DNA of 64,000 nt, from positions 186,001 to 250,000 of the IMG/VR virus record IMGVR_UViG_3300028654_000001; one strand, given 5' to 3'. The notes beneath the pieces are model-generated. The model did not search any database, was not told the DNA's origin, and saw only the letters and a program-made list of their open reading frames with translations. How positions within the stretch are numbered: the first letter of the stretch is position 1; each line of letters starts with the position of its first letter. Position numbers and translations under genes: made by a program. Below are positions 12,794 through 58,053 of this stretch, piece by piece.

Positions 12794-12804
12794 GGCTAAA
12801 CTGA

Positions 12805-26803: not shown

Positions 26804-28042
26804 ATGACTACAGCTCTTGCACGACCTAAGTTTTCGTGGAGGAAAGTTCTCGCTTTCGCGACTGATATCCTCCAAAAGCTTCCGAATCGAAGTGATGGGG
26901 TTCTGGCTATCATTGTCAAGTCTCTTTCCATTGTTGACTCATTCAACGTCCAAATGAACAAGGGTAAGTCAACTGCCCTGTTCGACTTCTTCGGCGATCT
27001 AGACTTGATTGAGGTAACCAATGCCCAGTTTGTCAGCTTGTTCTACTCAACAGGACTGAGGGACAGCTTCAAGATCATCAAATTCGAGATGGGGGATTAT
27101 GTAGAGATCGTGAGAGCCGAACACACTGGGATCGGTACTCTCTACTTCGTTGAGTGGCACTGGGGAAGTAAACCAGAACCTTCTGCTGACTTCTGGCATA
27201 CCAAGGGGTTCAACTTTGAGAAAGCTCTCGAGGTACTTTGGGACAAGTTCCACGGACGCCTCCATCTAGGGATCACCCAAGACCGAAGTGGGGAGCTCAA
27301 GTCAACCTATTCGGAGATTCCCGAGCCAAAAGATCCACTCTTAGGGAAGACCGCGGCCGTCCTTGACGAGTTCAAGGAGCAACACCTACTCTACATGAAG
27401 GATAAGATCCCGAGAACCTATCTGTTCTGCGGAAAGCAGGGGATCGGTAAGACATGCTTCTGTCTTCGACTCTCTCAACTCACCGGCGGTCGAACTCTGC
27501 GCATTGATGCCTGTGGGATCACCTCGGTTGGAGTCAAGGACCTAGACTTCATCATCAATGGTCTGTGCCCTAACTTCCTAATCGTGGATGACATCGACCG
27601 AGCTCCGGAATTGGAGAAGTCCCTCCCAACCCTGTTCTCAATCCTCTCAGACTTCAAGTGCAAGCACCCCAATGTCACCGTGGCCTTGACCATCAATGAC
27701 ATCACTAAACTTGACCCAGCCCTTCTGAGGCCAGGTCGTATTGATGAGATCATCGAGTTTGAACCACCCGATGAAGAAGAGCGTAGTCAAATTCTTGAGG
27801 GGTATCTGAAAGAGTTCGAGGTAGCCACTGAGGTAGACCTGAAGAGGATCGCTGAGTCTACTGAGGGGTTAACCGCCGCCTACCTTCGAGAAGTAGCCCT
27901 TCAACTCCGGTATCGCCCCCAAGAGAGAGTATTGAAGGTCATCAACCGGATGAACGATCTTGCCAGCGCCAAAGAGGAAAAGAAGAAAGAAACTAAGTGT
28001 AGCGAACCCGTTGGAAACTCGGCCCGCGCGACTCCGGTGTAA
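26804..28042 (+). CDS. AAA+ ATPase
   Basis: Walker A GKQGIGKT, Walker B IVDDID, SRH LDPALLRPGRID. Confidence 0.9.
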   Translation: MTTALARPKFSWRKVLAFATDILQKLPNRSDGVLAIIVKSLSIVDSFNVQMNKGKSTALFDFFGDLDLIEVTNAQFVSLFYSTGLRDSFKIIKFEMGDYVEIVRAEHTGIGTLYFVEWHWGSKPEPSADFWHTKGFNFEKALEVLWDKFHGRLHLGITQDRSGELKSTYSEIPEPKDPLLGKTAAVLDEFKEQHLLYMKDKIPRTYLFCGKQGIGKTCFCLRLSQLTGGRTLRIDACGITSVGVKDLDFIINGLCPNFLIVDDIDRAPELEKSLPTLFSILSDFKCKHPNVTVALTINDITKLDPALLRPGRIDEIIEFEPPDEEERSQILEGYLKEFEVATEVDLKRIAESTEGLTAAYLREVALQLRYRPQERVLKVINRMNDLASAKEEKKKETKCSEPVGNSARATPV

Positions 28043-28050
28043 TTAGGGCC

Positions 28051-28344
28051 ATGACTCCCGATAAGATTATGACGGCTTGTCATAAGTACAAGGAACTCCT
28101 CTTTGGATACCAGCCCATTAGCTTCCCAACAGCAGAGATGATCCCAGCCCTTGAAAGGGATTGCCGAGACTACAACAGGGAAAGTAGTCTTCAACACGCC
28201 ATGTGGATGTGCACTGCCATAGAGGAGCAGGTGAAAAATGGTAAGTGCTCCAAAGCCGAACGCTGGCTATGCTTCATTCAAGGGGTTCTCTGGATGAACG
28301 GGATCTGCAGCATCGATGAGATGAGAGACGATAATCGGGATTAG
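28051..28344 (+). CDS. hypothetical phage protein
   Basis: HAMWM..KAERWLCFIQGVL pattern; GGTGTA 9 nt upstream. Confidence 0.75.
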   Translation: MTPDKIMTACHKYKELLFGYQPISFPTAEMIPALERDCRDYNRESSLQHAMWMCTAIEEQVKNGKCSKAERWLCFIQGVLWMNGICSIDEMRDDNRD

Positions 28345-29567
28345 GTAGCAGCTGCTATAGCTGATTTCCTGCTTTTACCCCTACGAATTAGGGAGATATT
28401 AGAGTGATGAGTCTTGTATATCTTTGCAAGGTGAGTTCCCGGTAAGGAACTGGCTAGTATCTCCTGAACCTCATTATCTGTAAGTTTGGTGGCATAGTGG
28501 GTTTCACCACGAGGTCGACTCTCAGGGTGCAAACGAGACCCAGAGCGATCCCCACGTGGGACTCGCTCTGGGTTGGTAATAGAACTATGTCTCCCTTTCC
28601 TAGACATATCTATCATATTGTCTAGTTGAGTCCCCTCAAATAAGTGGTCTGGGTTGGCACAGCTCCTATTATCACACTTGTGGAGCGCAAACATTCCTGG
28701 GAGCAACTTACGCCCAAGCTTGGCTTCTAGTACTATACTGGTGACCCTACGTGTCTTTCTATTCACCCCTATCAAACCATACCTGTCATTACTTGAACCA
28801 GTACAAGTCCAACAACGGCCTAATTCCTCACGTAGTGTAGGCCCATTAATGTTCAGGTGCTGGATCAAAACTTCCGCAATTCGCATTCCGTGGAAGTATG
28901 CTGATTGTTCTTTCAAAACTTGAAGCTCCGCTGACACAACTACTTGCGGATTCAGAAGGTGCTTCCAAGTTAAACCCTTACAGATCTTTTGAATACAACT
29001 CTTGTTTACTCCAAACTTAGTGGCAAGCCACTGATAGCTCTCATGACTAATACGAATTTCCTGAATCATGTCTGCAGTGAGCTTAGAGTTCGAATTACCA
29101 GACCCACCCCTACTTTGAAGCACTTGCCTACAACACCTGCCCTTGGTGACCTTATCCACCATATTGTCTCTTGTTGTGCCTTCGAACAAGTGACTCGGTT
29201 CAAAACATGAGGGGTTGTCGCACCTGTGACATGAGAGCATACCAGAAGTAAGAGGGCGTTTTAGCTTGGCTTCCAATACCAAACGACTAGCCTGGTAGTG
29301 ATTTCTACCGATCATTACCCGGTAACGCTCACCGATCCGACTACTAGACTTTTCTAAGCACGGGCCTAAATCCTGTCGTACAACTACCTCAATCAGATTG
29401 TAAGTGATCCGATCCGCCAGAGCACGACCATGATAGATCATGGTCATATTGTAAATGTTTTGGATACTCATTGGCTCTAATAGATAGACATTAAATGAAG
29501 TATATGGTTTAGGGGTACCTAAACCATATACCACACTGCCGATTTTACTACAATGCTTCGGTAACAA
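28341..29567 (-). CDS. HNH endonuclease with tandem HNH modules and HTH-like tails
   Basis: CHRCDNPSCFEPSHL..N..D and LHKCDNRSCANPDHL..N..D; true start probably downstream (~29471-29447). Confidence 0.88.
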   Translation of the reverse strand: MLPKHCSKIGSVVYGLGTPKPYTSFNVYLLEPMSIQNIYNMTMIYHGRALADRITYNLIEVVVRQDLGPCLEKSSSRIGERYRVMIGRNHYQASRLVLEAKLKRPLTSGMLSCHRCDNPSCFEPSHLFEGTTRDNMVDKVTKGRCCRQVLQSRGGSGNSNSKLTADMIQEIRISHESYQWLATKFGVNKSCIQKICKGLTWKHLLNPQVVVSAELQVLKEQSAYFHGMRIAEVLIQHLNINGPTLREELGRCWTCTGSSNDRYGLIGVNRKTRRVTSIVLEAKLGRKLLPGMFALHKCDNRSCANPDHLFEGTQLDNMIDMSRKGRHSSITNPERVPRGDRSGSRLHPESRPRGETHYATKLTDNEVQEILASSLPGTHLAKIYKTHHSNISLIRRGKSRKSAIAAAT

Positions 29568-30561
29568 TCACCCAGAAGTCTGAACACAGGTTTGTGTTCT
29601 TGATGTAGTCATAACTGGCCCAATAATAGCCATTTAGCCCCCAATCAACTCCCCATGAATTGCGTACCAAGAAGGCACCCTTGGAGTTCGCTCTAAAGGG
29701 GTTGATCATGTTATCATTATATCCGACAAGGCATTGCGCGTGTCCGCCTTGGAGTTGCTCAGACGAACTTGGGAGATCCAAGAAGCCCTTAGTAGCCATG
29801 TCCTGGGACATGAAGTAGTCATAAACCTGAAACCCATAACCCACGAGCAAACCAGAGGCAATAGAGGCCTTCATTGTCGCTAGATCACCATCCGTAATAG
29901 AGTGGTAACTAGTGATCTTCTTGGCTGAGGCTGCTGTCCAGATTGCTTGAGGGGGCTTGACCGTAAACTTGGTAATATCATACGGCCAGGATGCCTCATC
30001 TGCGCAACCGTACTGGGCACCAGCTTTGATAGTGTCACGAATTGTCGCCCCTGAGTCCTCATTGACTGTGTTTTCTATAGTCCTAGTAACGTAGTACTCA
30101 AACAACCTGCTGACCTGGATCAGCTTCGTGGGAGTCGGCGTTGGGGTTGGTGTAGGAGTCGGCGTTGGAGCTGGTGTAGGAGTCGGCGTTGGAGCTGGTG
30201 GGGGTGTAACCGTTGTTAGGTAAGAGATCACCCCAGATGCAGATACTGTAATACCAGATACTGTAACCGTTGCCCCTGCTGCCATAGCGGAGCCAACAAT
30301 GGACTTTTTAGCACCCTTGCTGATCTCATCCGCTTCAACCATTCCGGCGAACATATTGGCGGTACAAGATCCAAGTTGCCCTTGATCCTCAATCGTGCTG
30401 CAGCCTGACCTGAGGTCAACAGAAGTAGGGGCTGCTGTTAGCAACCCTTGAGGTAATTTAACTCGGAATGCTTCATCCCGAGCGTCAAAGGTTTGTTTTC
30501 TCCATCCACCAAGGTGAACTTGGCGAACAGAACCGTCATGAGTGTGGTGTGCTCTGAGCAT
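29548..30561 (-). CDS. papain-like C1 cysteine peptidase
   Basis: DQGQLGSCTAN, GGHA, VRNSWG..WG..GY; Pro/Thr insert. Confidence 0.92.
   Translation of the reverse strand: MLRAHHTHDGSVRQVHLGGWRKQTFDARDEAFRVKLPQGLLTAAPTSVDLRSGCSTIEDQGQLGSCTANMFAGMVEADEISKGAKKSIVGSAMAAGATVTVSGITVSASGVISYLTTVTPPPAPTPTPTPAPTPTPTPTPTPTPTKLIQVSRLFEYYVTRTIENTVNEDSGATIRDTIKAGAQYGCADEASWPYDITKFTVKPPQAIWTAASAKKITSYHSITDGDLATMKASIASGLLVGYGFQVYDYFMSQDMATKGFLDLPSSSEQLQGGHAQCLVGYNDNMINPFRANSKGAFLVRNSWGVDWGLNGYYWASYDYIKNTNLCSDFWVIVTEAL
30130..30200 (-). repeat. tandem repeats encoding a PTPTP linker
   Basis: ggagtcggcgttgg unit repeated three times. Confidence 0.8.
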
Positions 30562-32668: not shown

Positions 32669-33076
32669 GTGGCTTCCCCTCTTTTCAACTCTCAGAATCG
32701 CCCTCGGGCGGCTTCCCACTTAGCCGAGATTGACTTCGGCCGACTGGAAAAGTCTCGTAAAGAGAGCGGGAACGTCATCATAACCTACGAGACTTGCCCG
32801 GGTATTTTCCTACTGGCCTATGAGCAGGTTCATAATAGGAGCATCACATTTGCTCCGTTCCCAGTACCGAAGTACTGGGAACGACATGTGACCAGGGTTC
32901 ACTTACTGGTACCCGCTCCAGGCTCAATCAATCTCAAGAATGGGTCCCAAGTTACAACTATACCGGAGGATAGTGTAGCCCATGTTCTAGGGGCCATCCA
33001 GTATGTGCTAGAACAAGGTGGGTTCCAGGTAGTACTAGGTGCTCCAACTCGATTTGAACGAGCCGACGTGATTTAG
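32669..33076 (+). CDS. hypothetical protein with TRFER tag
   Basis: Ends APTRFERADVI; GGTGTA 10 nt upstream. Confidence 0.75.
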   Translation: MASPLFNSQNRPRAASHLAEIDFGRLEKSRKESGNVIITYETCPGIFLLAYEQVHNRSITFAPFPVPKYWERHVTRVHLLVPAPGSINLKNGSQVTTIPEDSVAHVLGAIQYVLEQGGFQVVLGAPTRFERADVI

Positions 33077-33598
33077 ACGAATAATCTTACGGACTGCCAT
33101 GAGAATCTTCCCCAACCGATTGACTCCAGTCTTTGAGCTTCCCCATCCCCAATAGGGATCGTGGACAGTACTCTCGATAATTGGACTTTCTCCGGTGCTC
33201 AAAAGAACCAACTGGCAGCTCTCATTCTGATCGAACTTGGATAGAACTACCCCGAACATTGCCCAATCTTTGACAAGGTTAATGACCTTGCTCGGACCAC
33301 GTCCATCATCTACAAGGTTATCGAAGTCCGGGTGCTCGTTTGTCCTGATAAATGGAGAATCCCAATCTTCCCGTAAGGGAAGGGTCCTATCTCGTCCGAT
33401 GGTGGCTGCAGCCATAGGATTGGCAGCGTTATGAATCCGATCAACTAAGTCCATCCGATGTGGGAAGAACTTCATTGCCTGAAAAGAAGCTTCTGAGGTC
33501 TTCCACTTACGACCCATAAACATAAGGCCATGCCTTGAAAAGTTTGAGAAACATCCGTAGGGTATCTCCTTTGGTGAATAAAATAGTACTAGTTCCAT
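33035..33598 (-). CDS. NADAR (YbiA-like) family protein
   Basis: YGCFSNF, TSEASFQAMKF, LREDW, KF.Q, LLSTG, DPYWG..G.NRLGKILM.VR. Confidence 0.9.
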   Translation of the reverse strand: MELVLFYSPKEIPYGCFSNFSRHGLMFMGRKWKTSEASFQAMKFFPHRMDLVDRIHNAANPMAAATIGRDRTLPLREDWDSPFIRTNEHPDFDNLVDDGRGPSKVINLVKDWAMFGVVLSKFDQNESCQLVLLSTGESPIIESTVHDPYWGWGSSKTGVNRLGKILMAVRKIIRLNHVGSFKSSWST

Positions 33599-34847: not shown

Positions 34848-35597
34848 ATGCCAGCTGGAGCCTTTTGGCGCCTTCAGTACAGAGATGGCCTAGATCACAG
34901 AATTCAAGCTCGGGCTGATAGGCAAAGGTTTGCCCAAGACAGGAACGTCCTCACAGCCATTACTCGCTACCACGAGGGCGCTTTCGTTCTGGAGGTTCAG
35001 CTTGTCGATGATGCGGAGTCTACCTTCGATGGGAGTCTTCACGAGCTCTACAATCGACAGCAGTCCATTCGAAACCCACCGCCAGTGACTAGGACCATCT
35101 CCTCCTTAGCTAGATGGGGAAACACACCTGATTCAAATGGGATGGTCATAGATCCCCAAGTCAGGGAGAACATCATCAGTCAGTACATCCAAAGCTCAGG
35201 GGGTCGTCAACGATTGGCCCAGGCGATGGTAGCCCCTCTCCGAACACGACTAGACTACTCGGGGATGGCAAGACGGGTATTCATGGTTGAACCTCTCCAA
35301 GGAGGGGCCTTGCCCACCTACGACAAGGACATGGTCAGTGACTTCAACCCGCCCGACTGGGTCGACGCTGGCACGTGGGTCAAGAGTGACGATAAATACG
35401 CGATTATTGTGGCCACCGAGCCGAAGAATACCGAAAGCCTACCCTTCAACTCGGCTATAGTTGAATACCAGGTCTGGAGGGATTACGGGCCTCCAAAGAG
35501 GCTTGACGCGGAAACCTTCTGTAAGTACTGGTTACCATCCGAGACTCCAGCAGAGCCTAGAACCCGATTCGAACGAATTCTGATGGACGATGATTGA
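34848..35597 (+). CDS. mosaic protein: capsid-like segment + PxW domain + TRFER tag
   Basis: IISQYI..GRQRLAQAMVAPLR.RLDY...RRVFMVEPL..GALPTYDKD; ends PRTRFERILMDDD. Confidence 0.75.
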   Translation: MPAGAFWRLQYRDGLDHRIQARADRQRFAQDRNVLTAITRYHEGAFVLEVQLVDDAESTFDGSLHELYNRQQSIRNPPPVTRTISSLARWGNTPDSNGMVIDPQVRENIISQYIQSSGGRQRLAQAMVAPLRTRLDYSGMARRVFMVEPLQGGALPTYDKDMVSDFNPPDWVDAGTWVKSDDKYAIIVATEPKNTESLPFNSAIVEYQVWRDYGPPKRLDAETFCKYWLPSETPAEPRTRFERILMDDD

Positions 35598-35931: not shown

Positions 35932-36297
35932 ATGATGAGGGTTCTGATCATTGATTCATACGCCAAGGAAGAAGCAGACAAGGTAGTCAAGTTTGCGTTC
36001 CGCCCAGAGAATCTTTACCGTCCAGGGACTACCGCCAGGATCCCAGGAAATGTGAGGAAGCATATCCTTGTACTCGGGGACTACAAGATAGTCTTCTCGT
36101 TGACACGAGATCCTCAAACTGGTGAGGTTTTCAGACACCTCTCAATGTCGGTTCCAACTCTAGGGGCCTTCCCACACCCTGCAGCGATAACCGAGGTCAT
36201 CGACCTATTTGGATTCAAGGGGGGTTTGTGTAACTGTCAACTCGATGCAAATAGAGTTGATAATTGCATCACAGTAGCTCAGAACCTCGAATCTTAG
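35932..36297 (+). CDS. hypothetical protein
   Basis: VFS..RHLSMSVP..PHP pattern. Confidence 0.75.
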   Translation: MMRVLIIDSYAKEEADKVVKFAFRPENLYRPGTTARIPGNVRKHILVLGDYKIVFSLTRDPQTGEVFRHLSMSVPTLGAFPHPAAITEVIDLFGFKGGLCNCQLDANRVDNCITVAQNLES

Positions 36298-36680
36298 ATC
36301 ACATCCTCCCTCTCAAATCGAGTTGGAGGGAGTTTTTCTTCTACCACCTTCTCTCTTTTGCGACTTAGGACCTGTGGCTTTGGGGCTGGACGCCACTTAT
36401 CTAGGACATCTTTTAACCAACGAGAGATGGCTGACTTCGGGTTACCTTCACGTTCGAAGTGGATGTAGTTGTTCCCACCTGAAACTACCCGTATACCTGT
36501 TATTACGAACACAGGCATATCATAGGGTGTAGGGTTTTCGGGCAGGTTACGACAAACCCAATCAGGTCCTTCAGGGAATAGTGAGGTAATCTTGGATGGT
36601 GGAAGTGGGATTATCTTACTCCCCACTGCAACCCAACTATCATCCTTTGGAGCTTTCCAGGGGTCTTTGATCCGAGGCAT
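36294..36680 (-). CDS. PxW-domain protein with TRFER tag
   Basis: Ends EKLPPTRFEREDVI. Confidence 0.75.
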   Translation of the reverse strand: MPRIKDPWKAPKDDSWVAVGSKIIPLPPSKITSLFPEGPDWVCRNLPENPTPYDMPVFVITGIRVVSGGNNYIHFEREGNPKSAISRWLKDVLDKWRPAPKPQVLSRKREKVVEEKLPPTRFEREDVI

Positions 36681-36718
36681 TAGTTACCACTACACCGGTG
36701 TAAGTGGTAACTAATGCC
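36676..36718. promoter_or_regulatory. palindromic divergent promoter region (two back-to-back GGTGTA motifs)
   Basis: ggcattagttaccactacacc|ggtgtaagtggtaactaatgcc; perfect inverted repeat except one extra A. Confidence 0.7.
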
Positions 36719-37754
36719 AACGTGGAGGATTGAGTACCCTAGCCTACTTGCAAACGATAGAACACAGCTATACGCCGAGTGGGCTCTCATCCGAAACGAT
36801 CCTATGCTGACAAACTGTGAGACTACAGAAAGTCAGGACAACCCAATAACGATACTTACAGCCTCTTTCCTTGGGTTTGGCCCTGAGAACCCCGCGGTCT
36901 CAGAGATTATCCGAAGGCGAGGGATCCTACAACTTCCTGTCAACATCCAGATGCCGCTTATAGTATCCCGTCTGGCATCCAACAGTGAAGGTAGGTATGA
37001 GGTCGTTAGGGATGACCAACCCAGGTTCGGTGATGGCAGGCATTCGAGACCAGACAGGTTGCGAGGACACACCATTAACGCGATCATGTTTGATGTTGAG
37101 GCTTCGTTCAATAGTGGGATCCCACTACATCCTGGGGATCTTGTCGGAGTGGATCCCGCTACTGGATTAGTTATCCGTGAGGGTTTGTCCTTACTCTCGA
37201 CTCCTCCCGTTGGGATTGTAGCTGGGGTTGATATCGCAGTTGGTAGTGATCGATCTGAGATTACCCTGGCTCGGAGAAGGTTCCCAGAAGATGCTGATAG
37301 AGCTTTCAGGCAAGAGTTCATGGGGGAATTCCCAGAAGAAGGCTCCCCGGTTAGAACTGAGCTGACAGTCCTCGCTGCGGATCCCCCAAGAGCCCCCATT
37401 GGGTTCACGGTGCATGAGCGGATTGGAATGGCAGTCATCAACCCACGTACAATCGAACGGATTCAGGCAACTAGGGTTAACGTACCCCTATTCGAACTTG
37501 AGAATAACCCACAAATCAACCTGAGTGACATACGAGAACGAAGACTTGACCTGATCGAGCGTTCGGTGCACTCGATCCAAGAACAAGAGGATCGGGAGAT
37601 CTTGGCCGCACTCGAGGGTACCTTCACGAACCAGCCGAGGCCTCCAGTGACCCCGACCCCAGTGGTGGCACCTGAACCTGTGGAGGAGAACTTCATCCGT
37701 AGAACCCGCTTCGAGCGTATCCTTGATGATACAGATGAACTGTACCCACTCTAA
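36714..37754 (+). CDS. mosaic protein with terminase-like and capsid-like fragments + TRFER tag
   Basis: LRGHTINAIMFD, GVDIAVGSDRS, FRQEFMGEF, RTELTVL, PLFELENNPQI..I.ERR.DLIER; ends RTRFERILDDTDELYPL. Confidence 0.75.
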   Translation: MPTWRIEYPSLLANDRTQLYAEWALIRNDPMLTNCETTESQDNPITILTASFLGFGPENPAVSEIIRRRGILQLPVNIQMPLIVSRLASNSEGRYEVVRDDQPRFGDGRHSRPDRLRGHTINAIMFDVEASFNSGIPLHPGDLVGVDPATGLVIREGLSLLSTPPVGIVAGVDIAVGSDRSEITLARRRFPEDADRAFRQEFMGEFPEEGSPVRTELTVLAADPPRAPIGFTVHERIGMAVINPRTIERIQATRVNVPLFELENNPQINLSDIRERRLDLIERSVHSIQEQEDREILAALEGTFTNQPRPPVTPTPVVAPEPVEENFIRRTRFERILDDTDELYPL

Positions 37755-38290
37755 GTAGGATTTAGGATCGATCCTTCTGCAACAGCTTCAGTAGCCTCCA
37801 GAGCTTCCTTGGCTACCCCTCTAGATTTGATGGTAATTAAACCGGTGGCTGTACGGGTACCCGTTCTATGAACTCGATGCATCACCCCCTTGTGCACGTA
37901 AGTTCGTTCGGGTAGCATTCGAGTCCAAACCGCGATAAGTCTCTCTCCGAGCCCCCTGACGGTCAGGGTTGACCCTTTGAGGAGTTCTTGGTCAAGAGGT
38001 TCAATCCCAGGGCACTCGCCTTCTATGTCCTCCAGAGGTTCACCATTGAGTGCTTCCCCCAATGAGATTAACCCAACCTCAATGGTTGGATACTTACCAG
38101 ACGGTCCAGTTGGAGTTAGAACTAGAGCGATTCTTTTTCCTTCTGCTCGTACTTCCAGTGTAGATCCTTGTAGAATGGCCCTGTCAACGAGATCAACCTC
38201 TCGGTCAAGACGATCGAACCTAGAAGTTACCTGGCCTGTAGCAGGCTCGGTAACCTCAATGTCGTGGTCAAAACGGGTCATTTCAGGCAT
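37751..38290 (-). CDS. hypothetical protein with two N-terminal tag copies and an internal duplication
   Basis: TRFDH..SRFDR; LQGSTLEVR..RIAL / LKGSTLTVR..RLIA repeat. Confidence 0.7.
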   Translation of the reverse strand: MPEMTRFDHDIEVTEPATGQVTSRFDRLDREVDLVDRAILQGSTLEVRAEGKRIALVLTPTGPSGKYPTIEVGLISLGEALNGEPLEDIEGECPGIEPLDQELLKGSTLTVRGLGERLIAVWTRMLPERTYVHKGVMHRVHRTGTRTATGLITIKSRGVAKEALEATEAVAEGSILNPT

Positions 38291-38302
38291 TTTGGCTCAC
38301 TA

Positions 38303-38734
38303 ATGGCAACACCCTACTGCCCACAGCCGACGGATCAACCGGTGGACCCTAGCACACTACCGTGGATTCTGAACTTGAATGACATGAGATTCTCGCATGT
38401 TGAGGAGTTAGTATTTGTATGCTGGGCTAATACTATAGAAGAATTGAAGGAATTCGTCAATCGGGAAACCGTTGAGTACTACAAGGATGATAAGTGGGGG
38501 AAAACATTCAGAAAATACGGACCCATTGAGTGGTTTAATCGACCCTGGGACTATGATGAGAGCAAGCACTTTCTGCAAGTACCACCAACCTTAATTGCAT
38601 ACGGAGTCATGGAGTACCGAAACCCGATAGTTGTGAACCTCCCGAGTATCCAAGACCTGGTTTCTAGAGCTCAGTATGAAAACCCACAACCGGCTACGCG
38701 GCTCGAACGAATAGCCTTCAATATGGTGGAATAA
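38303..38734 (+). CDS. hypothetical protein with TRLER tag
   Basis: LNLNDMR..W.KTFRK.GP.EWFN.P; ends PATRLERIAFNMVE. Confidence 0.75.
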   Translation: MATPYCPQPTDQPVDPSTLPWILNLNDMRFSHVEELVFVCWANTIEELKEFVNRETVEYYKDDKWGKTFRKYGPIEWFNRPWDYDESKHFLQVPPTLIAYGVMEYRNPIVVNLPSIQDLVSRAQYENPQPATRLERIAFNMVE

Positions 38735-38735: not shown

Positions 38736-39611
38736 ATGCCACTTCCAGATTGGGCTATCCTTGGATCCGTTATCTACCCACGGCCGCGTGATTCATATAT
38801 TAGAATCATAAGGGAATCTGGGGCTATCATAGTATATGCACTTCGAGAAGAGGTGCAGTTGAATCAGAACCATGTGGTATTCAGCGTAGACTCTGAAACT
38901 CTAGAGCATAACTGGATGCCACTTTCAGAAGCTGCACCCTTGTTTTCTGACTCAACTTATGGGCCAATGCCCTCCTGGTTTACAATTGGCTCGCGAATTA
39001 TTCAAAACCACAACAATCTGACTTACATAATCCTCTCTTTTGACCCTATCCGCTGGTCAATGACTGCAACATTAGAAGACGAAGTGAGTCCAACCAACTT
39101 CACGGTGACAAACTTCATTAGACATTGGAGACCCGCTAGCTCAATCACAGAGCAGAAACCCACTACGAATGTCACTAATATCGTTCAAGGTAGGGTTCAA
39201 GTTGCCCCAGATTGGTTGTATCCGGGGAAGTTCCTTAGAAGGAAAGTGAATCCAAATCACGTGTTTGTGGTCTCAAGCCTAGACCCAAGACGTTTCGTTG
39301 CAGTACTGACTAGACTGGATAGCCTAAGGCCGATGGTTCTTGGATCGATCTTTGAAGAAGCTGATTATTGCCGTATCGATGAACAGTTCACTCAAGTCGA
39401 CAGTACAGGGAGCCCAGCAGCTGAGTATACGTGCAAGAAGTGCGGTGAAACCGGCGAGAGAGACTACGACGCTGAGGAGAGACGAGCCAGCATCGACACT
39501 GTTAGGGCTTATACCTGCAAGAGGGGTCACACCTGGTACTTCGTGGCGGGTACCGATCAAGATGGTAAGCCAGCCAATCCAAGTAGATTTGAGCGTGATA
39601 TCGGCATTTAG
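38736..39611 (+). CDS. triple PxW-domain protein with Zn ribbon and SRFER tag
   Basis: LPDW/MPSW/APDW repeats, CKKC..CKRGH, ends PSRFERDIGI. Confidence 0.8.
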   Translation: MPLPDWAILGSVIYPRPRDSYIRIIRESGAIIVYALREEVQLNQNHVVFSVDSETLEHNWMPLSEAAPLFSDSTYGPMPSWFTIGSRIIQNHNNLTYIILSFDPIRWSMTATLEDEVSPTNFTVTNFIRHWRPASSITEQKPTTNVTNIVQGRVQVAPDWLYPGKFLRRKVNPNHVFVVSSLDPRRFVAVLTRLDSLRPMVLGSIFEEADYCRIDEQFTQVDSTGSPAAEYTCKKCGETGERDYDAEERRASIDTVRAYTCKRGHTWYFVAGTDQDGKPANPSRFERDIGI

Positions 39612-39653
39612 TAGTATTCTTTTTATAGTTTTGGTGTAGTGTTCACTGCCATT

Positions 39654-40838
39654 ATGCAAAAGAAGCCGATTGTGAAGTCCACACCGAACAAGAAACCTAG
39701 CTGGTGGAACGCCCTTAACCTAGAATCACTAGATAGGTACAGTGATATGGCCCGGATGGTCATAGATCACGCTGTAACATCCGGAAAAACGGTATTCTCT
39801 GGGAATTGTAAGGGCAACCTGGAAGATGCTGATCAGGAAGACGCTTTCGAAGCTTTCGTTCAGGCATTGGTAGACGGCATTCAGGGTTACGTCAGCTTCA
39901 CCCATGCTCCTCCATTCGGCCGTGGGGCACTTGAAACTTGGGTGCTATGGGAAGGTGGATCGATTACCATCAAAATGGGTCTTGACAAAAAGGTCATGGT
40001 CAGTGTTGTAGCCCTTGGTTCCGAGGATTATGCAAATATTGCAGGGATTCTTGGTGGGTACCTGATTCCAGATAATGTCCGTCAACCGGTATACTCCCTG
40101 GCTAACGGAAATAATGGGATCGAAATCATGGAAGTCGGTCTAGCAGGAGAGTATCTAGAACGAGAGAACTACGTGCAGGAAGTTCTCGACGGTTTCGAGT
40201 ACATCATTGAGGAGATCAGAAGAGAGAGTCCAATCGGTCGTCTATCCATTATCTATGGGGATCCTGGTAGCGGGAAAACATACTTGATTCGTGGAATTAT
40301 CAACGAAATTCCAGATGCTATCTTCGTCCTAGTACCCTGCCACCTCGTTGAAGACTTGGCTGGCCCTCAACTGGTACCTATGTTGATTAGGGCGAGAAGC
40401 TTAGCAGGTACCAATAACCCCATTGTCCTGATTATCGAAGACGCGGACAGGGCCCTAGTACCTAGAGAAGAAGGTTCCCTGGCGGCTATCTCCTCTTTGT
40501 TGAATGTATCGGATGGTATCCTTGGCCGTACCCTAAATCTCAGGGTAATCTGTACAACCAATGCAAAGTTGGAGGATATCGATCCAGCCTTAAAACGGGC
40601 AGGTCGTCTATCTGTACAACTCAACATCGGACTTCTACCACTTGAAAAGTGTCAGGAGATCTACAGTAGACTCATGGACGGAGCTGAAGCATTATTCAGC
40701 GAACCCTTACCACTAGCTGAGATCTACCGATTTGTGAGTACCGAAAAGTTCGCCGACTCCGACGAGGACACTGACGAGAGTGAGGACGATGATGACGAGG
40801 ACGATGATGACGAGGACGATGATGATGACGAGGAATAA
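39654..40838 (+). CDS. AAA+ ATPase with poly-Asp/Glu tail
   Basis: GDPGSGKT, IIEDAD, LLN.SDG, TTN, DPALKRAGR; GGTGTA upstream. Confidence 0.9.
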   Translation: MQKKPIVKSTPNKKPSWWNALNLESLDRYSDMARMVIDHAVTSGKTVFSGNCKGNLEDADQEDAFEAFVQALVDGIQGYVSFTHAPPFGRGALETWVLWEGGSITIKMGLDKKVMVSVVALGSEDYANIAGILGGYLIPDNVRQPVYSLANGNNGIEIMEVGLAGEYLERENYVQEVLDGFEYIIEEIRRESPIGRLSIIYGDPGSGKTYLIRGIINEIPDAIFVLVPCHLVEDLAGPQLVPMLIRARSLAGTNNPIVLIIEDADRALVPREEGSLAAISSLLNVSDGILGRTLNLRVICTTNAKLEDIDPALKRAGRLSVQLNIGLLPLEKCQEIYSRLMDGAEALFSEPLPLAEIYRFVSTEKFADSDEDTDESEDDDDEDDDDEDDDDDEE

Positions 40839-43782: not shown

Positions 43783-44343
43783 CTACACCAAAAATGGAAA
43801 GCGTACTCTAGCTTGCACTAACTTACGATATAGAGCTTCTTTACCAGGCATTGAGAACGGTAGCGTGGTGAATATCTTGTCGTCACCAGAGTCACCACCC
43901 CACAGTACCATCTCGTATGCGGCCCATTCAAATGGTCCAACAGCCACTGACTCTATGGGCTCTTCTGCGTAAGCTAGACACACATGAGGCTTGTAAGTTG
44001 GGTACTTCTTAGAGTACCCAACTTTTGCTTTATCCAAAGAACTGCATAGATCCTCTTGAAAACTCATTAACTCTGAGCTAACAACAGATCCAATGATTGG
44101 AACACCCTCATCGCCTTTCGGAAAGCAGATAACCTCTTCAATGAGTAGTTGAATAGGTTTGGTGCGAGCTGCCACTTCATAGGCCACTACAATAGCTTTT
44201 GAGATGTGATCAATAGGAACTTTACTGCCCAAGTGTACGCAGGTTATGTGTTTTTCGTCCCGAGGTACGGGCTCTCCAGGAACCTGAATCTGGCTCAGGA
44301 GACGCGATACTTCGTGAGGAACTTTAATCCCGATGAAGGCCAT
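43783..44343 (-). CDS. 2H phosphoesterase (LigT/Acb1-like)
   Basis: KHITC and YKPHVCLAY histidine motifs. Confidence 0.85.
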   Translation of the reverse strand: MAFIGIKVPHEVSRLLSQIQVPGEPVPRDEKHITCVHLGSKVPIDHISKAIVVAYEVAARTKPIQLLIEEVICFPKGDEGVPIIGSVVSSELMSFQEDLCSSLDKAKVGYSKKYPTYKPHVCLAYAEEPIESVAVGPFEWAAYEMVLWGGDSGDDKIFTTLPFSMPGKEALYRKLVQARVRFPFLV

Positions 44344-53138: not shown

Positions 53139-54278
53139 TTAGGAAGCGGTCTTGTACCGCTTCCCCTCTCGGATATCGGTTGAGCTGATATCAAAGTCAC
53201 ATTGAAGTCTATGACACCTGAGGTTTGGTGGACAGGGAAAGTCCATCAAGGTCTTCATAACCCCGTCCAATCGACGGTCAGCTATAGTCAGACCTGTACA
53301 AGTTTCTGTGAAGATCTTGGCCTGCTCCTCGATAGTGATCCCCCATCGTTTAGCATCAAAAAGAGTTTCTAAGCTATCGGCACCCAAGAGGATCTCTATT
53401 CCAGGGAGATGTTTTGCCTTGTCCACATAGTAAGGGGCGCCCCAAGTTATGTAGACATTCCTACCCTGCAGCATCTTGGCTCGCTTGAGGATGTCCCAAG
53501 GCTTGAGAGGATTCTTGTGCGGGGGCTCGGCTTCCAGGGTGAAGGCAACAGGGCCTCCTACCTGGTCAATGTACCCGTCAGCCAGACCAAAGTGCCCAAA
53601 GTGTGGTGGGTTGAAAGATCCCGGAAGCAAGGCCCCGCGCCTCCGATACTCATCCTTGGGAAACTCCAGGAGTCTCTTGCCTGTACTCGAGAAGTAAGGT
53701 CGGCGACGAAGTCGTTCTTCAGACAGGACTTCAGCCCTACCATTGCGGAACTCTTCGATGCACCCCTCAGGTAGGTCTAGGCCAGTGATGAAAGTATTGG
53801 TGGCATCCTTGATGGAACTGATCAGGAGAGCGTTACAGATCTGACCGTCCAGGTGCCTTCTTTCGGCTCCAACTCCCTTAACCAGCTTGACATAGGTCAA
53901 GGTAGCTTTGTACTCTTGGAAGGTTGCCACGAAGATTCGGTGGTCTCCCTTATGGGCTGTAGTGCTCGCTGTGACCGCACAGACTCCGATCCCAATAGCT
54001 GGGGCCCCTTCATATTGGTACGCTCTGTAGAAGGCATCCATAGCGAAGTCCATGGCCGTCCCTTCGTTGGCATAACCGTCTGGAGAGAACCCAAGAAAGT
54101 TGTCAATGTCCTCCTTGGCATACGGCATATGACAACCAACTAGTACATCTGAGACCCCCGGTACATCCCAAATGTGACCAAAAGTCCCGGCACCCGCCAT
54201 ACCGGCAATGCAGAGCCGTACTTTCTTGGTTGGAAGGAAGTCTACTGAATCAAGTGATTGTAGTTGGGGTAGTGGCAT
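53139..54278 (-). CDS. CinA-like N-domain fused to a nucleotidyl (NMN adenylyl)transferase
   Basis: PGSFNPPHFGH (HxGH), LGAD, DISSTDIR; N-terminal GAG..VPG.S..PY. Confidence 0.75.
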   Translation of the reverse strand: MPLPQLQSLDSVDFLPTKKVRLCIAGMAGAGTFGHIWDVPGVSDVLVGCHMPYAKEDIDNFLGFSPDGYANEGTAMDFAMDAFYRAYQYEGAPAIGIGVCAVTASTTAHKGDHRIFVATFQEYKATLTYVKLVKGVGAERRHLDGQICNALLISSIKDATNTFITGLDLPEGCIEEFRNGRAEVLSEERLRRRPYFSSTGKRLLEFPKDEYRRRGALLPGSFNPPHFGHFGLADGYIDQVGGPVAFTLEAEPPHKNPLKPWDILKRAKMLQGRNVYITWGAPYYVDKAKHLPGIEILLGADSLETLFDAKRWGITIEEQAKIFTETCTGLTIADRRLDGVMKTLMDFPCPPNLRCHRLQCDFDISSTDIREGKRYKTAS

Positions 54279-54282
54279 ACTT

Positions 54283-55326
54283 TCAGCTTCCTGCTGCTAC
54301 GAGTTTAGGTTCAGCATTCTTCCTCAAAAGACTGCAAAAAGAACCTGGTACCTCAAATGGCCTGAAGGTAGGCTTCCCGACGAGGCTCTTGAGCAGGTTG
54401 TCAAAAGCCTCGTGAACATCATCTGCCTTGGAGGGCCTCATTCTTCTCTCTGGGTTCAGACAGATCTTGAGTAGGTTTTGGATCTCTCGGGGTACCGCAT
54501 CAGGCATCTCGTTGGTTTTAACGTCTCCGCCGAGAATAGCAACCATACACTTGACGGCCATATAGATGTCGGTCGCTTCCGAAGCTTCCTTTTTTTCTGG
54601 TACCTCAGGCGGGTAGTAGTCAGCATACCTAGTGATGAGTACGCGAATTCTGGTCATACCAGAGTAGATTGAATCAGCGGGATCAGGCTCGCCAACGGGT
54701 CTACTCCCATGAGGAGTGTCCTCTAGTGCCCGCTCTCTAGTAGAGGCCGAGTAGCACCAATCGATGAGCTTGGCGCCGTGGTTCTGACCAAACAACAGGA
54801 TGTGAGGGGGGAGAACTGCCCCATGCAGGAAACCATTCTTGTGCGCCCACCATAGGCCAACCAGGGTTCTCTTGAACATCCAAGCCATGTCCCGATAGTC
54901 AATCCCTTTTGGGTAGGCTCTAAGAACATCATCAATGGTGAAGTAGTCGGGTATCAATGAAAGGATGTTCCCCCTCTGTCCCCGAGAGTCAAACCCTCCG
55001 TAGCTAGTTGGATAGTAGAGGTTGAACTTGGACCAATCCGGATCCGTTGATGTTAGTCCATTCAGGACTTGGCTCTCCCTGATCAATAAATCGTTGTTAC
55101 TTGGATCCGAGCAGATCCTAACGATGACCGGAACCTCAACCACATCATCATCGTCATCCTCTAGAATGTGATCAAAGCGAGTCCGAGGCCCTGCGTGCTT
55201 GACAGGAGTTTTTGGAGCTGGGTTCTCATCCTTGTAAGTCCCCTGGTAAAGGTTGCAGAGATCACCCTCCATCAACCGAGCCCCAAACGTCACGCTCTTC
55301 TTGTCACCAAGAGCTAGCGTCGGCAT
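54283..55326 (-). CDS. atypical Ser/Thr kinase-like protein with an inserted TRFDH tag
   Basis: N.DL..RE, AWMFKR.L..L..AH..G.LHGAVLPPHIL, LIDWCYS, YPPE, DIYM. Confidence 0.8.
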   Translation of the reverse strand: MPTLALGDKKSVTFGARLMEGDLCNLYQGTYKDENPAPKTPVKHAGPRTRFDHILEDDDDDVVEVPVIVRICSDPSNNDLLIRESQVLNGLTSTDPDWSKFNLYYPTSYGGFDSRGQRGNILSLIPDYFTIDDVLRAYPKGIDYRDMAWMFKRTLVGLWWAHKNGFLHGAVLPPHILLFGQNHGAKLIDWCYSASTRERALEDTPHGSRPVGEPDPADSIYSGMTRIRVLITRYADYYPPEVPEKKEASEATDIYMAVKCMVAILGGDVKTNEMPDAVPREIQNLLKICLNPERRMRPSKADDVHEAFDNLLKSLVGKPTFRPFEVPGSFCSLLRKNAEPKLVAAGS

Positions 55327-56693
55327 GTTAGTTCTTTGTCATCAGCGGTTGACCCATACGAGAAAATAGTGACAGGAGCTCTCATAGTTTTAGTTATTCC
55401 AGATATTAGACGATCTGTATTCTTAAGGGTAGTGAAAACTGGCTCAGCATAGATATCTAAGAAGTGAGAGTAGGGGATCCCATCCTTATCGAAGTACTTT
55501 TTGAGGTATTGGTAGGCTTCCCAAGTATTTGCGTCGAGGAGTATCTTGTAGAAAGGCTTGGTCGAACAGTCGTACCGTAAGCAGACTTTTTGTGGGCCGT
55601 GGATGTGGTCGAGGTGATTGAGGGCTATCTCATCCAACCCACCAAGAACTTCGCGGGCGTATCTGGCCATAACGAAGTCGTAGTAACCTACCCGGAAGGC
55701 ACCTTGCCACTCTCCTTGAGTGTTATGCTCTACTAATCTGGCATCTGGGTCCTCCGATGGGAAGGGTCCAGTCCCGTGCCGCGTAAGATAGGTTCGAGTA
55801 ACCCACATCCTGGTCACCTTTCCAGAGAACCCCTTGAGTAGTTCTAGGGCGTTGTGGAAAGTGCAGTTGCTCCAAGTAGAGTGAGGGTGGAACCCGTACT
55901 CCTCGTCCAGAAGTACTCCTTGAGCCCCCTCGAATAGGGTGACCCCTGATTCGAGAGCCTTGGTTAGGTAGTCTTGGTTGACTACCCTGACCCCTGCCTT
56001 GTCGATTAGGTGGTAGTAGTTCTCCATGAAGTACTCGACCAAAGTTCTGTCCCTGAGCATGTCATATTCGAACATGAGCCTTCGAGTCATATCCACGGAT
56101 AACTCAACGGGTAGGTCGTCCAAAAGGGGGGTCGTCTCCTCCAACTTTCTCTGACGAATAACTTCAAGTTTGTCCTTGATGACTGATGGCTTTCGGAAGT
56201 CCCTCATCCGAATAGCACCCTCCGGATCTTGTATTGAGTCTGAGACAGTTTCCCCAATACCCATGCCACATGACCCGTGGCGCCCAAACCCAACACTCTT
56301 ACAGGTAAAGAGAGCCTCTCGGTGCAGCTCTCGAAGGCGGTTAGTCGCCATGTGGAAAGGAGTGGTGACTAGGGCCATCTCATCAATGGCCAACCTTTGG
56401 TAGGCGTCGGTCACCCCAAGAGTTTCAAGGTGCTCCTCTTCGTATTGGAGAAGAAGCGGGTTCACCACCATGTAACGGCTAAGGTAAGTCTCCGCGCCGG
56501 CAAGAGTACCCGAACTAAACTGGGAAAAACAATGAGTTTTACCGTCTCTTAGGACTACATGATGGGCAGCTTGAGCACCACCATTAAAACGAACTACAGT
56601 GTGAGACCCCTCCCTACGAGTAAGGTAGTCTACTACACTACCCTTCCCTTCGTCCCCAAACCCCAATCCAACAACGATCCATACCTTAGCCAT
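55314..56693 (-). CDS. purA: adenylosuccinate synthetase-like protein
   Basis: GLGFGDEGKG, RFNGGAQAAH, HGSCGMGIG, FEGAQG.LLD, TRHGTGPFP, FRVG. Confidence 0.85.
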   Translation of the reverse strand: MAKVWIVVGLGFGDEGKGSVVDYLTRREGSHTVVRFNGGAQAAHHVVLRDGKTHCFSQFSSGTLAGAETYLSRYMVVNPLLLQYEEEHLETLGVTDAYQRLAIDEMALVTTPFHMATNRLRELHREALFTCKSVGFGRHGSCGMGIGETVSDSIQDPEGAIRMRDFRKPSVIKDKLEVIRQRKLEETTPLLDDLPVELSVDMTRRLMFEYDMLRDRTLVEYFMENYYHLIDKAGVRVVNQDYLTKALESGVTLFEGAQGVLLDEEYGFHPHSTWSNCTFHNALELLKGFSGKVTRMWVTRTYLTRHGTGPFPSEDPDARLVEHNTQGEWQGAFRVGYYDFVMARYAREVLGGLDEIALNHLDHIHGPQKVCLRYDCSTKPFYKILLDANTWEAYQYLKKYFDKDGIPYSHFLDIYAEPVFTTLKNTDRLISGITKTMRAPVTIFSYGSTADDKELTCRR

Positions 56694-56726
56694 GGAATTT
56701 CACCGAAGTGCTTCAAATAAATGAGC

Positions 56727-56761
56727 AGTAGTTCGATATAAAGAGAAATACCGAACTACTG
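56727..56761. terminator. intergenic hairpin between the vWA and purA-like genes
   Basis: cagtagttcg...cgaactactg inverted repeat. Confidence 0.5.
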
Positions 56762-56775
56762 TTATGTTATGCAAA

Positions 56776-57744
56776 TTACAGTCTTTGGATCTTCGGGGGT
56801 TTTCCTGGGTCCACTCCCTTGGCCTTGGCCAAGTCCACCAATGAGGATGCTATCTTGTTCGAGACCAATTGAGAGGTTCCGGTAGCCTCGAGAGCTGCCT
56901 TGGCCCCATCAACGGTTACGACCTTCTCACAGACACCCATCGTGGTTGCAATGAGCTCACAGATGTCCTCCTCATCTTGAAGGAGCAGGACATTCTCTGG
57001 CCCAAGTAACTTCTTCCAAGCATCCTGGATCTTGGTATCACGACCATGGTTGGTGTGCTGGGGTATGATGTAGAAGACGTTGTACCGTTGCTGACACTCC
57101 TTGATGATGTCAGCAGTTGGTATCTCAGCTACTTCCATTGTCTCTCCGAAGAGAGTTTTGACCGACTCACGTCTTACCGCCGGATGCGCGTACTCATCAC
57201 CAATGATGAATAAGTAGCCCTTTTTCTGTCGTTTCTCCCAACAGTCGATCTTGGTATGTCGAGCGAAGAAGTAGATGGCATTCTGGTAGGACTCACCGTT
57301 GTTACCCCCACCGTTACCCTCGAGCCAGAAGGACTCGAGGTCTTCATCCATCCGGTTGTCACTCTCGAATTGACCAAACTGAGCTGAGCCTCGGTCTGAG
57401 AACTCATCCCCGACAGCCCCAAACAAGATCTGAGTATCTGGAATACCAACTTTGCCAATTAGGCCGTGTAGCTTAGGGAGTTTCCCGTGAGCTACACGAG
57501 GTACCGACTCCATTGACCCAGTGACATCCAGGATAATCCCAACTGCAATTGAGTTTGGGTGCTCCAATGAGTCACAAGACTCGCGTATTGCCACCCCAAG
57601 TGGATTCAGACGTGGGTGAACATTCTGCTGGTCCCGTGGTTTTGACGCCTGTGCAGCGTGGTGTGCAAAGGTTGGCTGACCAGTCTGTTGACGAGTCGTG
57701 CTCCTTTGTTGATAGAAATCATGACTCCAACTTCCGCCTCCCAT
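56776..57744 (-). CDS. vWA-domain protein
   Basis: MIDAS ILDVTGSM, AVGD, QFESD, EGNGGG..ESY, LFIIGDE. Confidence 0.85.
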   Translation of the reverse strand: MGGGSWSHDFYQQRSTTRQQTGQPTFAHHAAQASKPRDQQNVHPRLNPLGVAIRESCDSLEHPNSIAVGIILDVTGSMESVPRVAHGKLPKLHGLIGKVGIPDTQILFGAVGDEFSDRGSAQFGQFESDNRMDEDLESFWLEGNGGGNNGESYQNAIYFFARHTKIDCWEKRQKKGYLFIIGDEYAHPAVRRESVKTLFGETMEVAEIPTADIIKECQQRYNVFYIIPQHTNHGRDTKIQDAWKKLLGPENVLLLQDEEDICELIATTMGVCEKVVTVDGAKAALEATGTSQLVSNKIASSLVDLAKAKGVDPGKPPKIQRL

Positions 57745-57800
57745 GAGAGACCTCTACTTTCCTTCATGTTTACTGTTAGAACAACTCGTTGTGGTCTGAT

Positions 57801-58046
57801 CTAATCTTCATCGTCTCTAAGAATCCGATCGAACCGAGTACTCCCAAGAAGCGTTGTACTCGGTTTACTAGACACCGATGGCACTTCATCGGTGTCTAGA
57901 ATTCGATCGAATCGAGTTGGTCGAGAAGTACTTTGGGTATCTGGTACTTGACTCCGAATAGGCTCTACACCCGCTTGACTTTTAGGCTCTTGTTTTCTAC
58001 GAGACATAAGAGTGTAGAAGTCATCTGTCCAAAAACCGCCGCCCAT
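57801..58046 (-). CDS. mini-protein: copy of the vWA N-terminus + two TRFDR tags
   Basis: MGGGFWTDDFY vs MGGGSWSHDFY; PTRFDRIL and STRFDRIL. Confidence 0.8.
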   Translation of the reverse strand: MGGGFWTDDFYTLMSRRKQEPKSQAGVEPIRSQVPDTQSTSRPTRFDRILDTDEVPSVSSKPSTTLLGSTRFDRILRDDED

Positions 58047-58053
58047 AAGCCTC

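Follow-up and report, generated by a model that had tools for sequence, protein, structure and literature searches.

Analysis of a 64,000-nt stretch of the IMG/VR virus record IMGVR_UViG_3300028654_000001 (hereafter, the window) showed that a 346-aa protein (ORF2; 36714..37754, + strand), conserved in a small, rare clade of uncultivated huge phages, is a chimera of a catalytically dead remnant of the large-terminase (TerL) ATPase domain and two pieces of a phage-G-type HK97-fold major capsid protein (MCP), and that it ends in a peptide tag shared by roughly 18% of the ORFs in the window. The protein can neither package DNA nor build a capsid, so it may imitate those proteins, for a purpose that is not yet known. 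The original prediction had described the ORF as a tagged mosaic of terminase and capsid fragments in non-native order and had proposed that it acts as an immune decoy. The ORF and each of the peptides named in that prediction were found exactly where they had been placed, and the mosaic itself was confirmed. The interpretation was partly supported: the composition, the permuted capsid order, the lack of enzymatic or capsid capability, and the shared tag were borne out, whereas action as an immune decoy, binding to Avs, CapRel, or Lit-type sensors, and routing by the tag to an effector were not shown. The decoy reading stays plausible but unproven.

Capsid- and terminase-derived segments of ORF2

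A failure of the segments to match capsid or terminase profiles had been named in advance as grounds for rejecting the mosaic, and a comparison with PHROGs had been proposed; the capsid segments gave strongly significant matches. A hidden Markov model (HMM) of canonical phage-G-type MCPs hit residues 211–254 (MCP 248–292, i-E 1e-10) and residues 250–305 (MCP 84–143, i-E 2.5e-12); PHROG 2522 ("major head protein"; the Pfam family is PF25209) matched at E 3.8e-8; the solved structure of phage G gp27 (PDB 6WKK) matched at E 2.8e-17 in two stretches, in the same permuted order; and hhalign gave a probability of 98%. Residues 211–254 (37344..37475, +) correspond to the C-terminal P-domain β-hairpin (MCP residues ~245–292; 6WKK residues 232–279; tblastn E 2e-9), and residues 255–305 (37476..37628, +) correspond to the P-domain strand and spine helix (MCP residues ~87–143; 6WKK residues 83–143; tblastn E 6e-9). 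The second piece is fused directly after the capsid C-terminus, and this order was found in every family member. No piece for MCP 144–247 and no A-domain piece was found in the window. When the N-terminal domain was compared with the capsid A domain, hhalign gave E 0.06–0.25 and the HMM gave an i-E of 0.12 in one distant member, values that lend no support to an A domain but do not firmly exclude one.

The terminase segment was much harder to detect. No terminase family appeared at E ≤10 for the ORF or its pieces in Pfam or PHROGs, and BLASTP against the phage G TerL and a profile of residues 1–210 searched against 1.84 billion proteins also returned nothing terminase-like. However, the only non-capsid PDB hit of the family profile was the TerL ATPase domain of Thermus phage P74-26 (4ZNI), at the Walker-B strand (RPDNLRGATLDFVILDEAAM), and BLASTP against the TerL of phage P23-45 aligned residues 112–220 with TerL 134–266 (E 6e-4). 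Furthermore, hhalign of the region against 67 diverse TerLs gave a probability of 91%, E 1e-6, and a score of 47, whereas column-shuffled controls gave a mean of 13.6 and a maximum of 23.3, and 39 neighboring gene families all scored below 5% probability. Residues 92–206 (36987..37331, +) therefore represent an inactivated TerL ATPase remnant (Terminase_6N, PF03237) that runs from the Walker-B strand RPDRLRGHTINAIMFDV through a motif-III-like LLSTPP to AFRQEFMGEF, and is collinear with the Thermus phage proteins but about 40 residues shorter. It has no Walker A motif (no G-x4-GK[ST]), and the Walker-B Asp-Glu is changed to DV (FDVE) here and to DD (IDDM/IDDA) in relatives. The Walker-B and FRQEF pieces are in native TerL order, contrary to the original prediction, and the RNase H-like match that it had assigned to IVAGVDIAVGSDRSEI was only a weak alternative alignment (GVDIAVGSDRSEI; E 0.0065, probability 6%), with no further sequence of the nuclease domain (PF17289). 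The protein cannot hydrolyze ATP or cut DNA.

Two other readings of this region were considered and set aside. A second, degenerate spine-helix copy at residues 165–206, left by a tandem duplication, was suggestive by eye in the family member P0145, but was not significant, and the terminase alignment explains the region better. A match of residues 123–163 to a Calx-beta giant protein looked like a short IxDD motif resemblance and was not informative.

Residues 1–90 (36714..36983, +) form an N-terminal α/β domain of unknown origin. This was the only confidently modeled part of the AF2 prediction (pLDDT 70–89, β-α-β-β-α-β), which was otherwise too poor for fold assignment (mean pLDDT 40.5). Foldseek returned only generic ferredoxin-like matches, none below E 1e-3, and a long hhalign alignment to the TerL N-terminus is possible but weak. 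Residues 306–327 (37629..37694, +) are a proline-rich, poorly conserved linker with the highest dN of the protein, and residues 328–346 (37695..37751, +) are the tag, RRTRFERILDDTDELYPL.

ORF2 has 12 full-length homologs at 41–78% identity. Its dN/dS was about 0.15 overall, 0.1–0.2 in every segment (0.07–0.27 for the remnant segments), and about 0.007 in the tag, which was nearly invariant in the family. Core capsid motifs (RTELTVL, PLFEL..NP, and ERRxDLIER) are retained. Meanwhile, three independent assemblies of one lineage (family members P0009, P0011, and P0012), including a 473-kb contig, carry in-frame deletions of the spine-helix piece, and two of the three also lack part of the terminase piece; the deletions were checked at the DNA level in the related locus L177. 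Because pieces are dispensable in some lineages, no A domain is detectable, and the N-arm and E-loop lie in a separate ORF, ORF2 cannot be a capsid subunit.

The C-terminal tag and the neighboring tagged proteins

The motif [TS]-R-[FL]-[ED]-R occurred 19 times in the 105 ORFs of the window against 0.22 expected, with 15 occurrences within the last 16 residues. The codons vary synonymously and the flanking DNA is unrelated, so the tag is not a DNA repeat, an intron or intein boundary, or a mobile-element end. The exact form PTRFER[DE]DVI-stop occurred on only 8 of 2.9 million IMG/VR contigs, and the tag was absent around about 160 canonical capsid genes of other huge phages. Related loci contained 43 more tagged ORFs, and in one locus, 10 consecutive small genes were tagged. 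Literature searches for the tag or for capsid-derived decoys found nothing.

Several neighbors of ORF2 are tagged, and some carry other capsid pieces. The 249-aa ORF1 (34848..35597, +), whose synteny with ORF2 is conserved, contains the capsid N-arm and E-loop (MCP 2–97) at residues ~100–193 (nt 35145–35426) and ends in RTRFERILMDDD (PHROG 2522, E 2e-9; tblastn, E 2.5e-16; HMM, i-E 4e-22; hhalign, 99.6%). The 291-aa tagged zinc-ribbon protein g67 (38736..39611, +) has relatives of 383–386 aa that carry a capsid piece (MCP 162–285; hhalign probability 91%, E 1e-6; HMM hits in the related loci L004, L006, L175, L177, and L099), but an alignment showed a 93-aa deletion that has removed most of this piece in the window. 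A g47-like protein was a borderline case, and further small ORFs with capsid fragments were found elsewhere in the genomes of the clade, so that such fragments occur in at least six different tagged protein families. The 128-aa g63 (36294..36680, −) ends in PPTRFEREDVI and the 156-aa g66 (38264..38734, +) ends in PATRLERIAFNMVE, whereas the 179-aa g65 (37751..38290, −) has tag-like motifs at its N-terminus (MPEMTRFDHD... and SRFDRLD). Embedded in this tag-rich cluster, and conserved next to it in all related loci, is g68 (39639..40838, +), a Cdc48/p97-like AAA+ ATPase with a poly-acidic tail (Pfam AAA, E 8e-14; best PDB matches, Cdc48/p97). The surrounding genes are metabolic and accessory, including a NADAR gene and a 2H/Acb1-like gene, rather than a head module. 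No tRNAs were found, and promoter- and terminator-like sites were no more frequent than in shuffled sequence.

The pieces in ORF1, ORF2, and the g67-like proteins (MCP 2–97, 84–143 plus 245–292, and 162–285) jointly cover almost the whole capsid protein, and no intact capsid gene was found in the roughly 90 kb of the contig that was examined. This raises the possibility that the three proteins together rebuild a complete HK97 fold as the real capsid protein of the clade. We consider this very unlikely and reject it, because the g67 of the window has lost most of its piece, one lineage has lost the spine-helix piece in frame, the pieces overlap and are fused to unrelated domains, the context is non-structural, and about 420 kb of the contig is unexamined.

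Possible roles of the chimera

The anatomy described above, namely an orphan N-terminal domain, a dead terminase ATPase remnant, two permuted capsid P-domain pieces, a flexible linker, and a clade-specific tag, in a selected protein that is one of several tagged proteins each carrying a different piece of the same capsid protein, is what the analysis demonstrates (confidence of about 0.9), whereas any mechanism is our inference, because no binding or phenotype data exist. Our preferred, but tentative, mechanism (probability of about 0.3) is that ORF2 is a non-assembling mimic of the two virion proteins that bacterial immune sensors most often recognize. Its capsid-like and terminase-like surfaces would bind a factor that normally recognizes those proteins, most likely a host sensor, and the tag on its flexible tether would dock the complex to whatever reads the tag, for which the neighboring Cdc48-like ATPase is the obvious candidate; together, these steps would sequester or dismantle the bound factor. 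This is the architecture of an adaptor, with a binding module, a linker, and a docking peptide, as in SspB (XB motif) for ClpX or the p97/Cdc48 cofactor motifs, although there is no sequence relation to these, the link between the tag and the ATPase rests on adjacency alone (binding to its N-domain was not assayed), and here the peptide is shared by many ORFs.

Circumstantial points in favor of this mechanism are the accessory gene context, the AAA+ ATPase in the cluster, and the repeated recruitment of capsid fragments into tagged proteins. Capsid proteins are also frequent triggers of CapRel, Thoeris, and CBASS-type systems (PMC13728456). In contrast, no known defense or anti-defense family was matched in PADLOC, Pfam, or PHROGs (no PADLOC hit for ORF1, ORF2, g65, g66, or g67, and only generic AAA hits for the ATPases). 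The capsid pieces are only 39–57% identical to canonical capsid proteins, which are themselves about 90% conserved, so a sensor epitope may not be preserved. The terminase remnant lacks the P-loop and the Walker-B catalytic Glu, and that active-site region is reportedly part of what the Avs sensors contact. The resident capsid and terminase genes of this genome were not located, so we do not know which proteins the fragments imitate. The tag also occurs on an apparently intact RecA/Sak4-like ATPase and on many orphan proteins, and is therefore a general address label rather than decoy-specific.

It is also possible, though less likely, that ORF2 is a capsid-directed accessory protein, in which the tag is a capsid-targeting or scaffold-like peptide and the capsid-derived pieces dock the protein onto or into the phage's own capsid lattice by strand or domain complementation, making it a minor virion, cargo, or assembly-control protein. 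The retained pieces (N-arm, E-loop, P-domain strands, and spine helix) are those that make inter-subunit contacts in HK97-fold shells, ORF1 and ORF2 hold exactly complementary pieces that break at MCP 86/87, and one tagged protein (13554–14603) matches virion or decoration-protein PHROGs. The tag, as a short conserved terminal peptide that follows a flexible linker and is shared by unrelated proteins, resembles encapsulin cargo-loading peptides and the C-terminal coat-binding helix of the P22 scaffolding protein, which address diverse proteins to an HK97-fold shell. However, neither an encapsulin shell gene nor a motif match was tested, binding to the inner face of a shell was not measured, and the carriers here include capsid fragments themselves and a recombination-type ATPase, which would be an odd capsid cargo. 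The gene also lies among metabolic and accessory genes rather than in a head module, the lineage-specific deletions of individual pieces argue against a fixed structural role, and no terminase-fragment docking role is known. Ccm, a capsid-protein homolog that phage-inducible chromosomal islands use to redirect helper capsid size, is likewise a capsid-protein derivative that acts on capsid assembly, but it keeps a complete HK97 fold and co-assembles, whereas ORF2 keeps only fragments.

A comparably doubtful alternative is that a duplicated head-module copy decayed and its remnants were fused into new proteins, whose present function resides in the orphan N-terminal domain and the tag, so that the similarity is historical and implies no mimicry. 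The loss of catalytic and assembly determinants, the dispensability of individual pieces, and the absence of a confident AF2 fold for the remnant regions are consistent with this, but purifying selection acts on the remnant segments themselves, core capsid motifs are retained, and the occurrence of capsid fragments in at least six tagged families suggests repeated selection for capsid-like surfaces. Another proposal, raised as an alternative in the original prediction, is that the fragments are dominant-negative poisons of capsid assembly or packaging in co-infecting huge phages. The canonical capsid family, about 90% identical across hundreds of huge-phage contigs, would be a broad target, and the fragments correspond to interface elements. 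We regard this as unlikely, because the fragments are highly diverged, there is no precedent and no data, and they would also poison the phage's own assembly if its capsid protein, whose type is not known, belonged to the same family.

A more far-reaching reading, also unlikely but not excluded, is a clade-wide protein-addressing system in which about one-fifth of the proteome carries a C-terminal P-T-R-F-E-R tag read by a phage Cdc48-like AAA+ machine. A subset of the tagged proteins would be decoy adaptors built from fragments of the phage's own most-sensed proteins, which would capture host immune sensors, or the assembly intermediates of rival phages, and deliver them for unfolding, a viral targeted-unfolding counter-defense with no described precedent in phages.

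Capsid and terminase proteins are the main molecular patterns by which bacteria detect phages. A phage that keeps several selected, non-functional copies of fragments of exactly these proteins is a natural candidate for a protein-level decoy or for a regulator of capsid assembly, neither of which has been described in this form. The permuted HK97 remnant, with no detectable A domain, is also an unusual natural experiment on the capsid fold. Separately, a single short C-terminal peptide shared by so many of the genes here implies an unrecognized sorting, docking, or turnover pathway in huge phages.

Capsid- and terminase-derived segments of ORF2

The 346-aa ORF at 36714-37754 (+), here called ORF2, is present in the window, which is part of the 512,571-bp viral contig IMGVR_UViG_3300028654_000001, and all of the peptides named in the original prediction of a terminase–capsid mosaic lie where that prediction placed them. 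No obvious Shine-Dalgarno sequence occurs upstream of ORF2 (36700-36713). We compared its segments with capsid and terminase profiles. In a PHROG search, PHROG 2522 ("major head protein") matched residues 248-304 of ORF2 (E 3.8e-8), and the same family matched a different stretch of the upstream ORF at 34848-35597, here called ORF1 (E 2e-9). A tblastn search against GenBank phages found only capsid genes, namely those of an uncultured 485-kb phage, Tunturi_5, and phage G (gp27). When the 291-aa capsid protein of the uncultured phage was used as a reference, capsid residues 4-86 mapped to ORF1 (E 2.5e-16), capsid residues 248-291 mapped to nt 37347-37475 of ORF2 (E 2e-9), and the segment directly following the latter in ORF2 matched capsid residues 87-143 (E 6e-9). 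An HMM of canonical capsid proteins confirmed these three pieces (i-E 4e-22, 1e-10, and 2.5e-12, respectively), but detected no counterpart of capsid residues 144-247, the A domain, anywhere in the window. The solved phage G capsid protein (6WKK) was hit in the same two stretches of ORF2 (E 2.8e-17), and hhalign gave a probability of 98%. Therefore, ORF2 carries the P-domain hairpin followed by the P-domain strand and spine helix, in a permuted order, whereas ORF1 carries the N-arm and E-loop, with the break at capsid residue 86/87. A genuinely split capsid gene was considered as a reading of these proteins, but we regard it as very unlikely.

In contrast to the capsid pieces, the terminase-derived piece was not seen by standard searches. 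Pfam and PHROGs gave no terminase match for the ORF or its pieces at E <= 10, BLASTP against phage G TerL gave nothing, and a profile of residues 1-210 searched against 1.84 billion representative proteins returned 11 hits, none of which was a terminase. However, when the family profile was searched against the PDB, a single hit besides 6WKK was returned, the P74-26 TerL ATPase domain at its Walker-B strand. A sub-profile of residues 84-213 repeated this hit and also aligned AFRQEFMGEF with EFRQEYGAEF of TerL. BLASTP against P23-45 TerL aligned ORF2 residues 112-220 with TerL residues 134-266 (E 6e-4 for the pair), and hhalign against 67 diverse TerLs gave a probability of 91%, E 1e-6, and a score of 47, covering TerL 100-259. 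As controls, 30 column-shuffled versions scored a mean of 13.6 and a maximum of 23.3, the reversed sequence scored 10.8, and 39 neighboring gene families all stayed below 5% probability against both the TerL and capsid profiles. Therefore, the terminase remnant is real, and the predicted combination of terminase and capsid segments in one ORF was confirmed. The remnant is collinear with TerL, not scrambled as had been proposed; it lacks a P-loop and has DV (DD in relatives) in place of the Walker-B Asp-Glu. The additional "RNase H-like" terminase motif of the original prediction was supported only by a weak alternative alignment (E 0.0065).

Conservation and further capsid fragments

ORF2 has 12 homologues with 41-78% identity that keep the whole architecture and the C-terminal tag, and more distant members keep the same order of capsid pieces. 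Synteny from ORF1 to ORF2 to the AAA+ ATPase gene is conserved in eight related loci. The dN/dS ratio was 0.07-0.27 in every segment of ORF1 and ORF2 and about 0.01 in the tag, although these are approximate Nei-Gojobori values with dS near saturation. Exapted debris without mimicry, another possible reading of the remnants, is ranked only slightly below our preferred one. One lineage, seen in three independent assemblies including a 473-kb contig, has in-frame deletions; all three assemblies lack the spine-helix piece, and two of them also lack part of the terminase piece, with no displaced copy in another frame. An AF2 model built from the 11-sequence alignment had a mean pLDDT of 40.5, in which only residues 1-73 (b-a-b-b-a-b) were confident, and Foldseek gave only generic ferredoxin-like matches.

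Capsid fragments were also found in other proteins. The 383-386-aa relatives of g67, a tagged protein at 38736-39611 (+), contain capsid residues 162-285 ("PEFVGIMPVRTDLTVL"; hhalign probability 91%, E 1e-6). Compared with its relative at 12008-13159 of the related locus L004, g67 of this window has lost 93 residues of this piece, which in relatives is a capsid A-domain/P-hairpin fragment; g67 also has a C-terminal zinc-ribbon-like CxxC...C motif. The g47-like 689-aa protein gave a borderline match to capsid residues 3-159 (probability 51%). Elsewhere in the genomes of the clade, small ORFs carry capsid residues 55-100 (two tagged paralogues on this same contig), 70-119, 161-242, and 186-237. 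In the fragment with residues 161-242 (i-E 3e-8), encoded by a 132-aa open frame on the minus strand of a 228-kb contig (IMGVR_UViG_3300037067_009442; locus coordinates not worked out), the tag motif RPTRFERIL is embedded where the canonical protein has ...ESQATLLKTG. By eye, the tag also resembles the start of the capsid spine helix, ERRFDLIER; a capsid origin of the tag itself is possible, but was not tested.

A shared peptide tag and its genomic context

The motif [TS]-R-[FL]-[ED]-R occurs 19 times in the 105 ORFs of the window, against 0.22 expected from shuffled proteins, and 15 of the occurrences start 9-16 residues before the stop, usually after a proline-rich stretch. The sites include 13528(+), 14574(+), 19345(+), 19796(+), 20053(+), 24473(-), 33047(+), 35562(+), 36323(-), 38696(+), 39582(+), 42626(+), 46398(-), and 57839(-). 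The C-terminal tag, P-T-R-F-[ED]-R, comes in two flavors, ...EDVI-stop and ...IL-acidic tail, and is present on about 18% of the ORFs. The codons for every position vary synonymously and the flanking DNA is unrelated, indicating that selection acts on the peptide. An 81-aa ORF at 57801-58046 (-) carries two tags in tandem (PTRFDRILDTDE... and STRFDRILRDDED). Tag-like motifs also occur at a few N-termini (MPEMTRFDHD..SRFDRLD; MNRFDRILSE), at 37751-38290 (-) of the window and in the related loci L004 (5347-5586) and L006 (5170-5400), so the motif is not strictly C-terminal.

The tag is confined to one small clade of huge phages, and its reader is unknown. The exact form PTRFER[DE]DVI-stop occurs in 22 stretches on only 8 IMG/VR contigs, and about 160 loci around canonical capsid genes of other huge phages have essentially none. 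The densest array seen, a 6.2-kb locus of the 228-kb contig, has ten consecutive small ORFs that all end in the tag. Of 43 further tagged ORFs, one encodes an apparently intact RecA/Sak4-like ATPase and the rest are orphans; this 219-aa ATPase, encoded on the same 512-kb contig outside the window (3138-3794 (-) of locus L188), has intact Walker A and B motifs and ends in PTRFEREDVI. Therefore, the tag is a general address label.

The region is not a head module. It encodes a CCA-adding enzyme (11441-12793 (+)), an HNH endonuclease and a papain-like protease (28341-30561 (-)), and an NAD and purine metabolism block at 53139-59442 (-) with an NMNAT-like cytidylyltransferase, a kinase-like protein, adenylosuccinate synthetase, and NAMPT; the whole window contains no tRNA genes. 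A NADAR-domain protein (33035-33598 (-); E 1e-25) and a 2H phosphoesterase that matches Acb1 just below its cut-off (43783-44343 (-)) are candidate counter-defense genes near the cluster. There are two classical-clade AAA+ ATPases (26804-28042 (+) and 39639-40838 (+)), the second of which, g68, is Cdc48/p97-like with an Asp/Glu tail of approximately 40 residues and sits inside the tag-rich cluster.

Possible roles of the chimera

The building blocks of ORF2 belong to known families, whereas the permuted, fragment-bearing, tagged architecture and the clade-wide tag have not been described; no paper in the literature searched mentions the tag or capsid-derived decoys. The original interpretation of ORF2 was only partly supported; that it is an immune decoy was not shown. 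A capsid-directed accessory or cargo role is also possible but doubtful, and an anti-competitor poison is unlikely. The main gap is that the resident capsid and terminase genes of this genome were not located. What the analysis demonstrates is a selected chimera of a dead terminase remnant, permuted capsid P-domain pieces, a linker, and a shared tag, which is one of several tagged carriers of capsid fragments and is neither an enzyme nor the capsid subunit. Beyond this, we infer that the protein acts as a mimic of capsid and terminase surfaces, tethered through the tag. A host-sensor decoy or adaptor is ranked first, tentatively (probability of about 0.3), because of the accessory and counter-defense context, the adaptor-like architecture, and the repeated recruitment of fragments of the proteins that defense systems commonly sense (PMC13728456).
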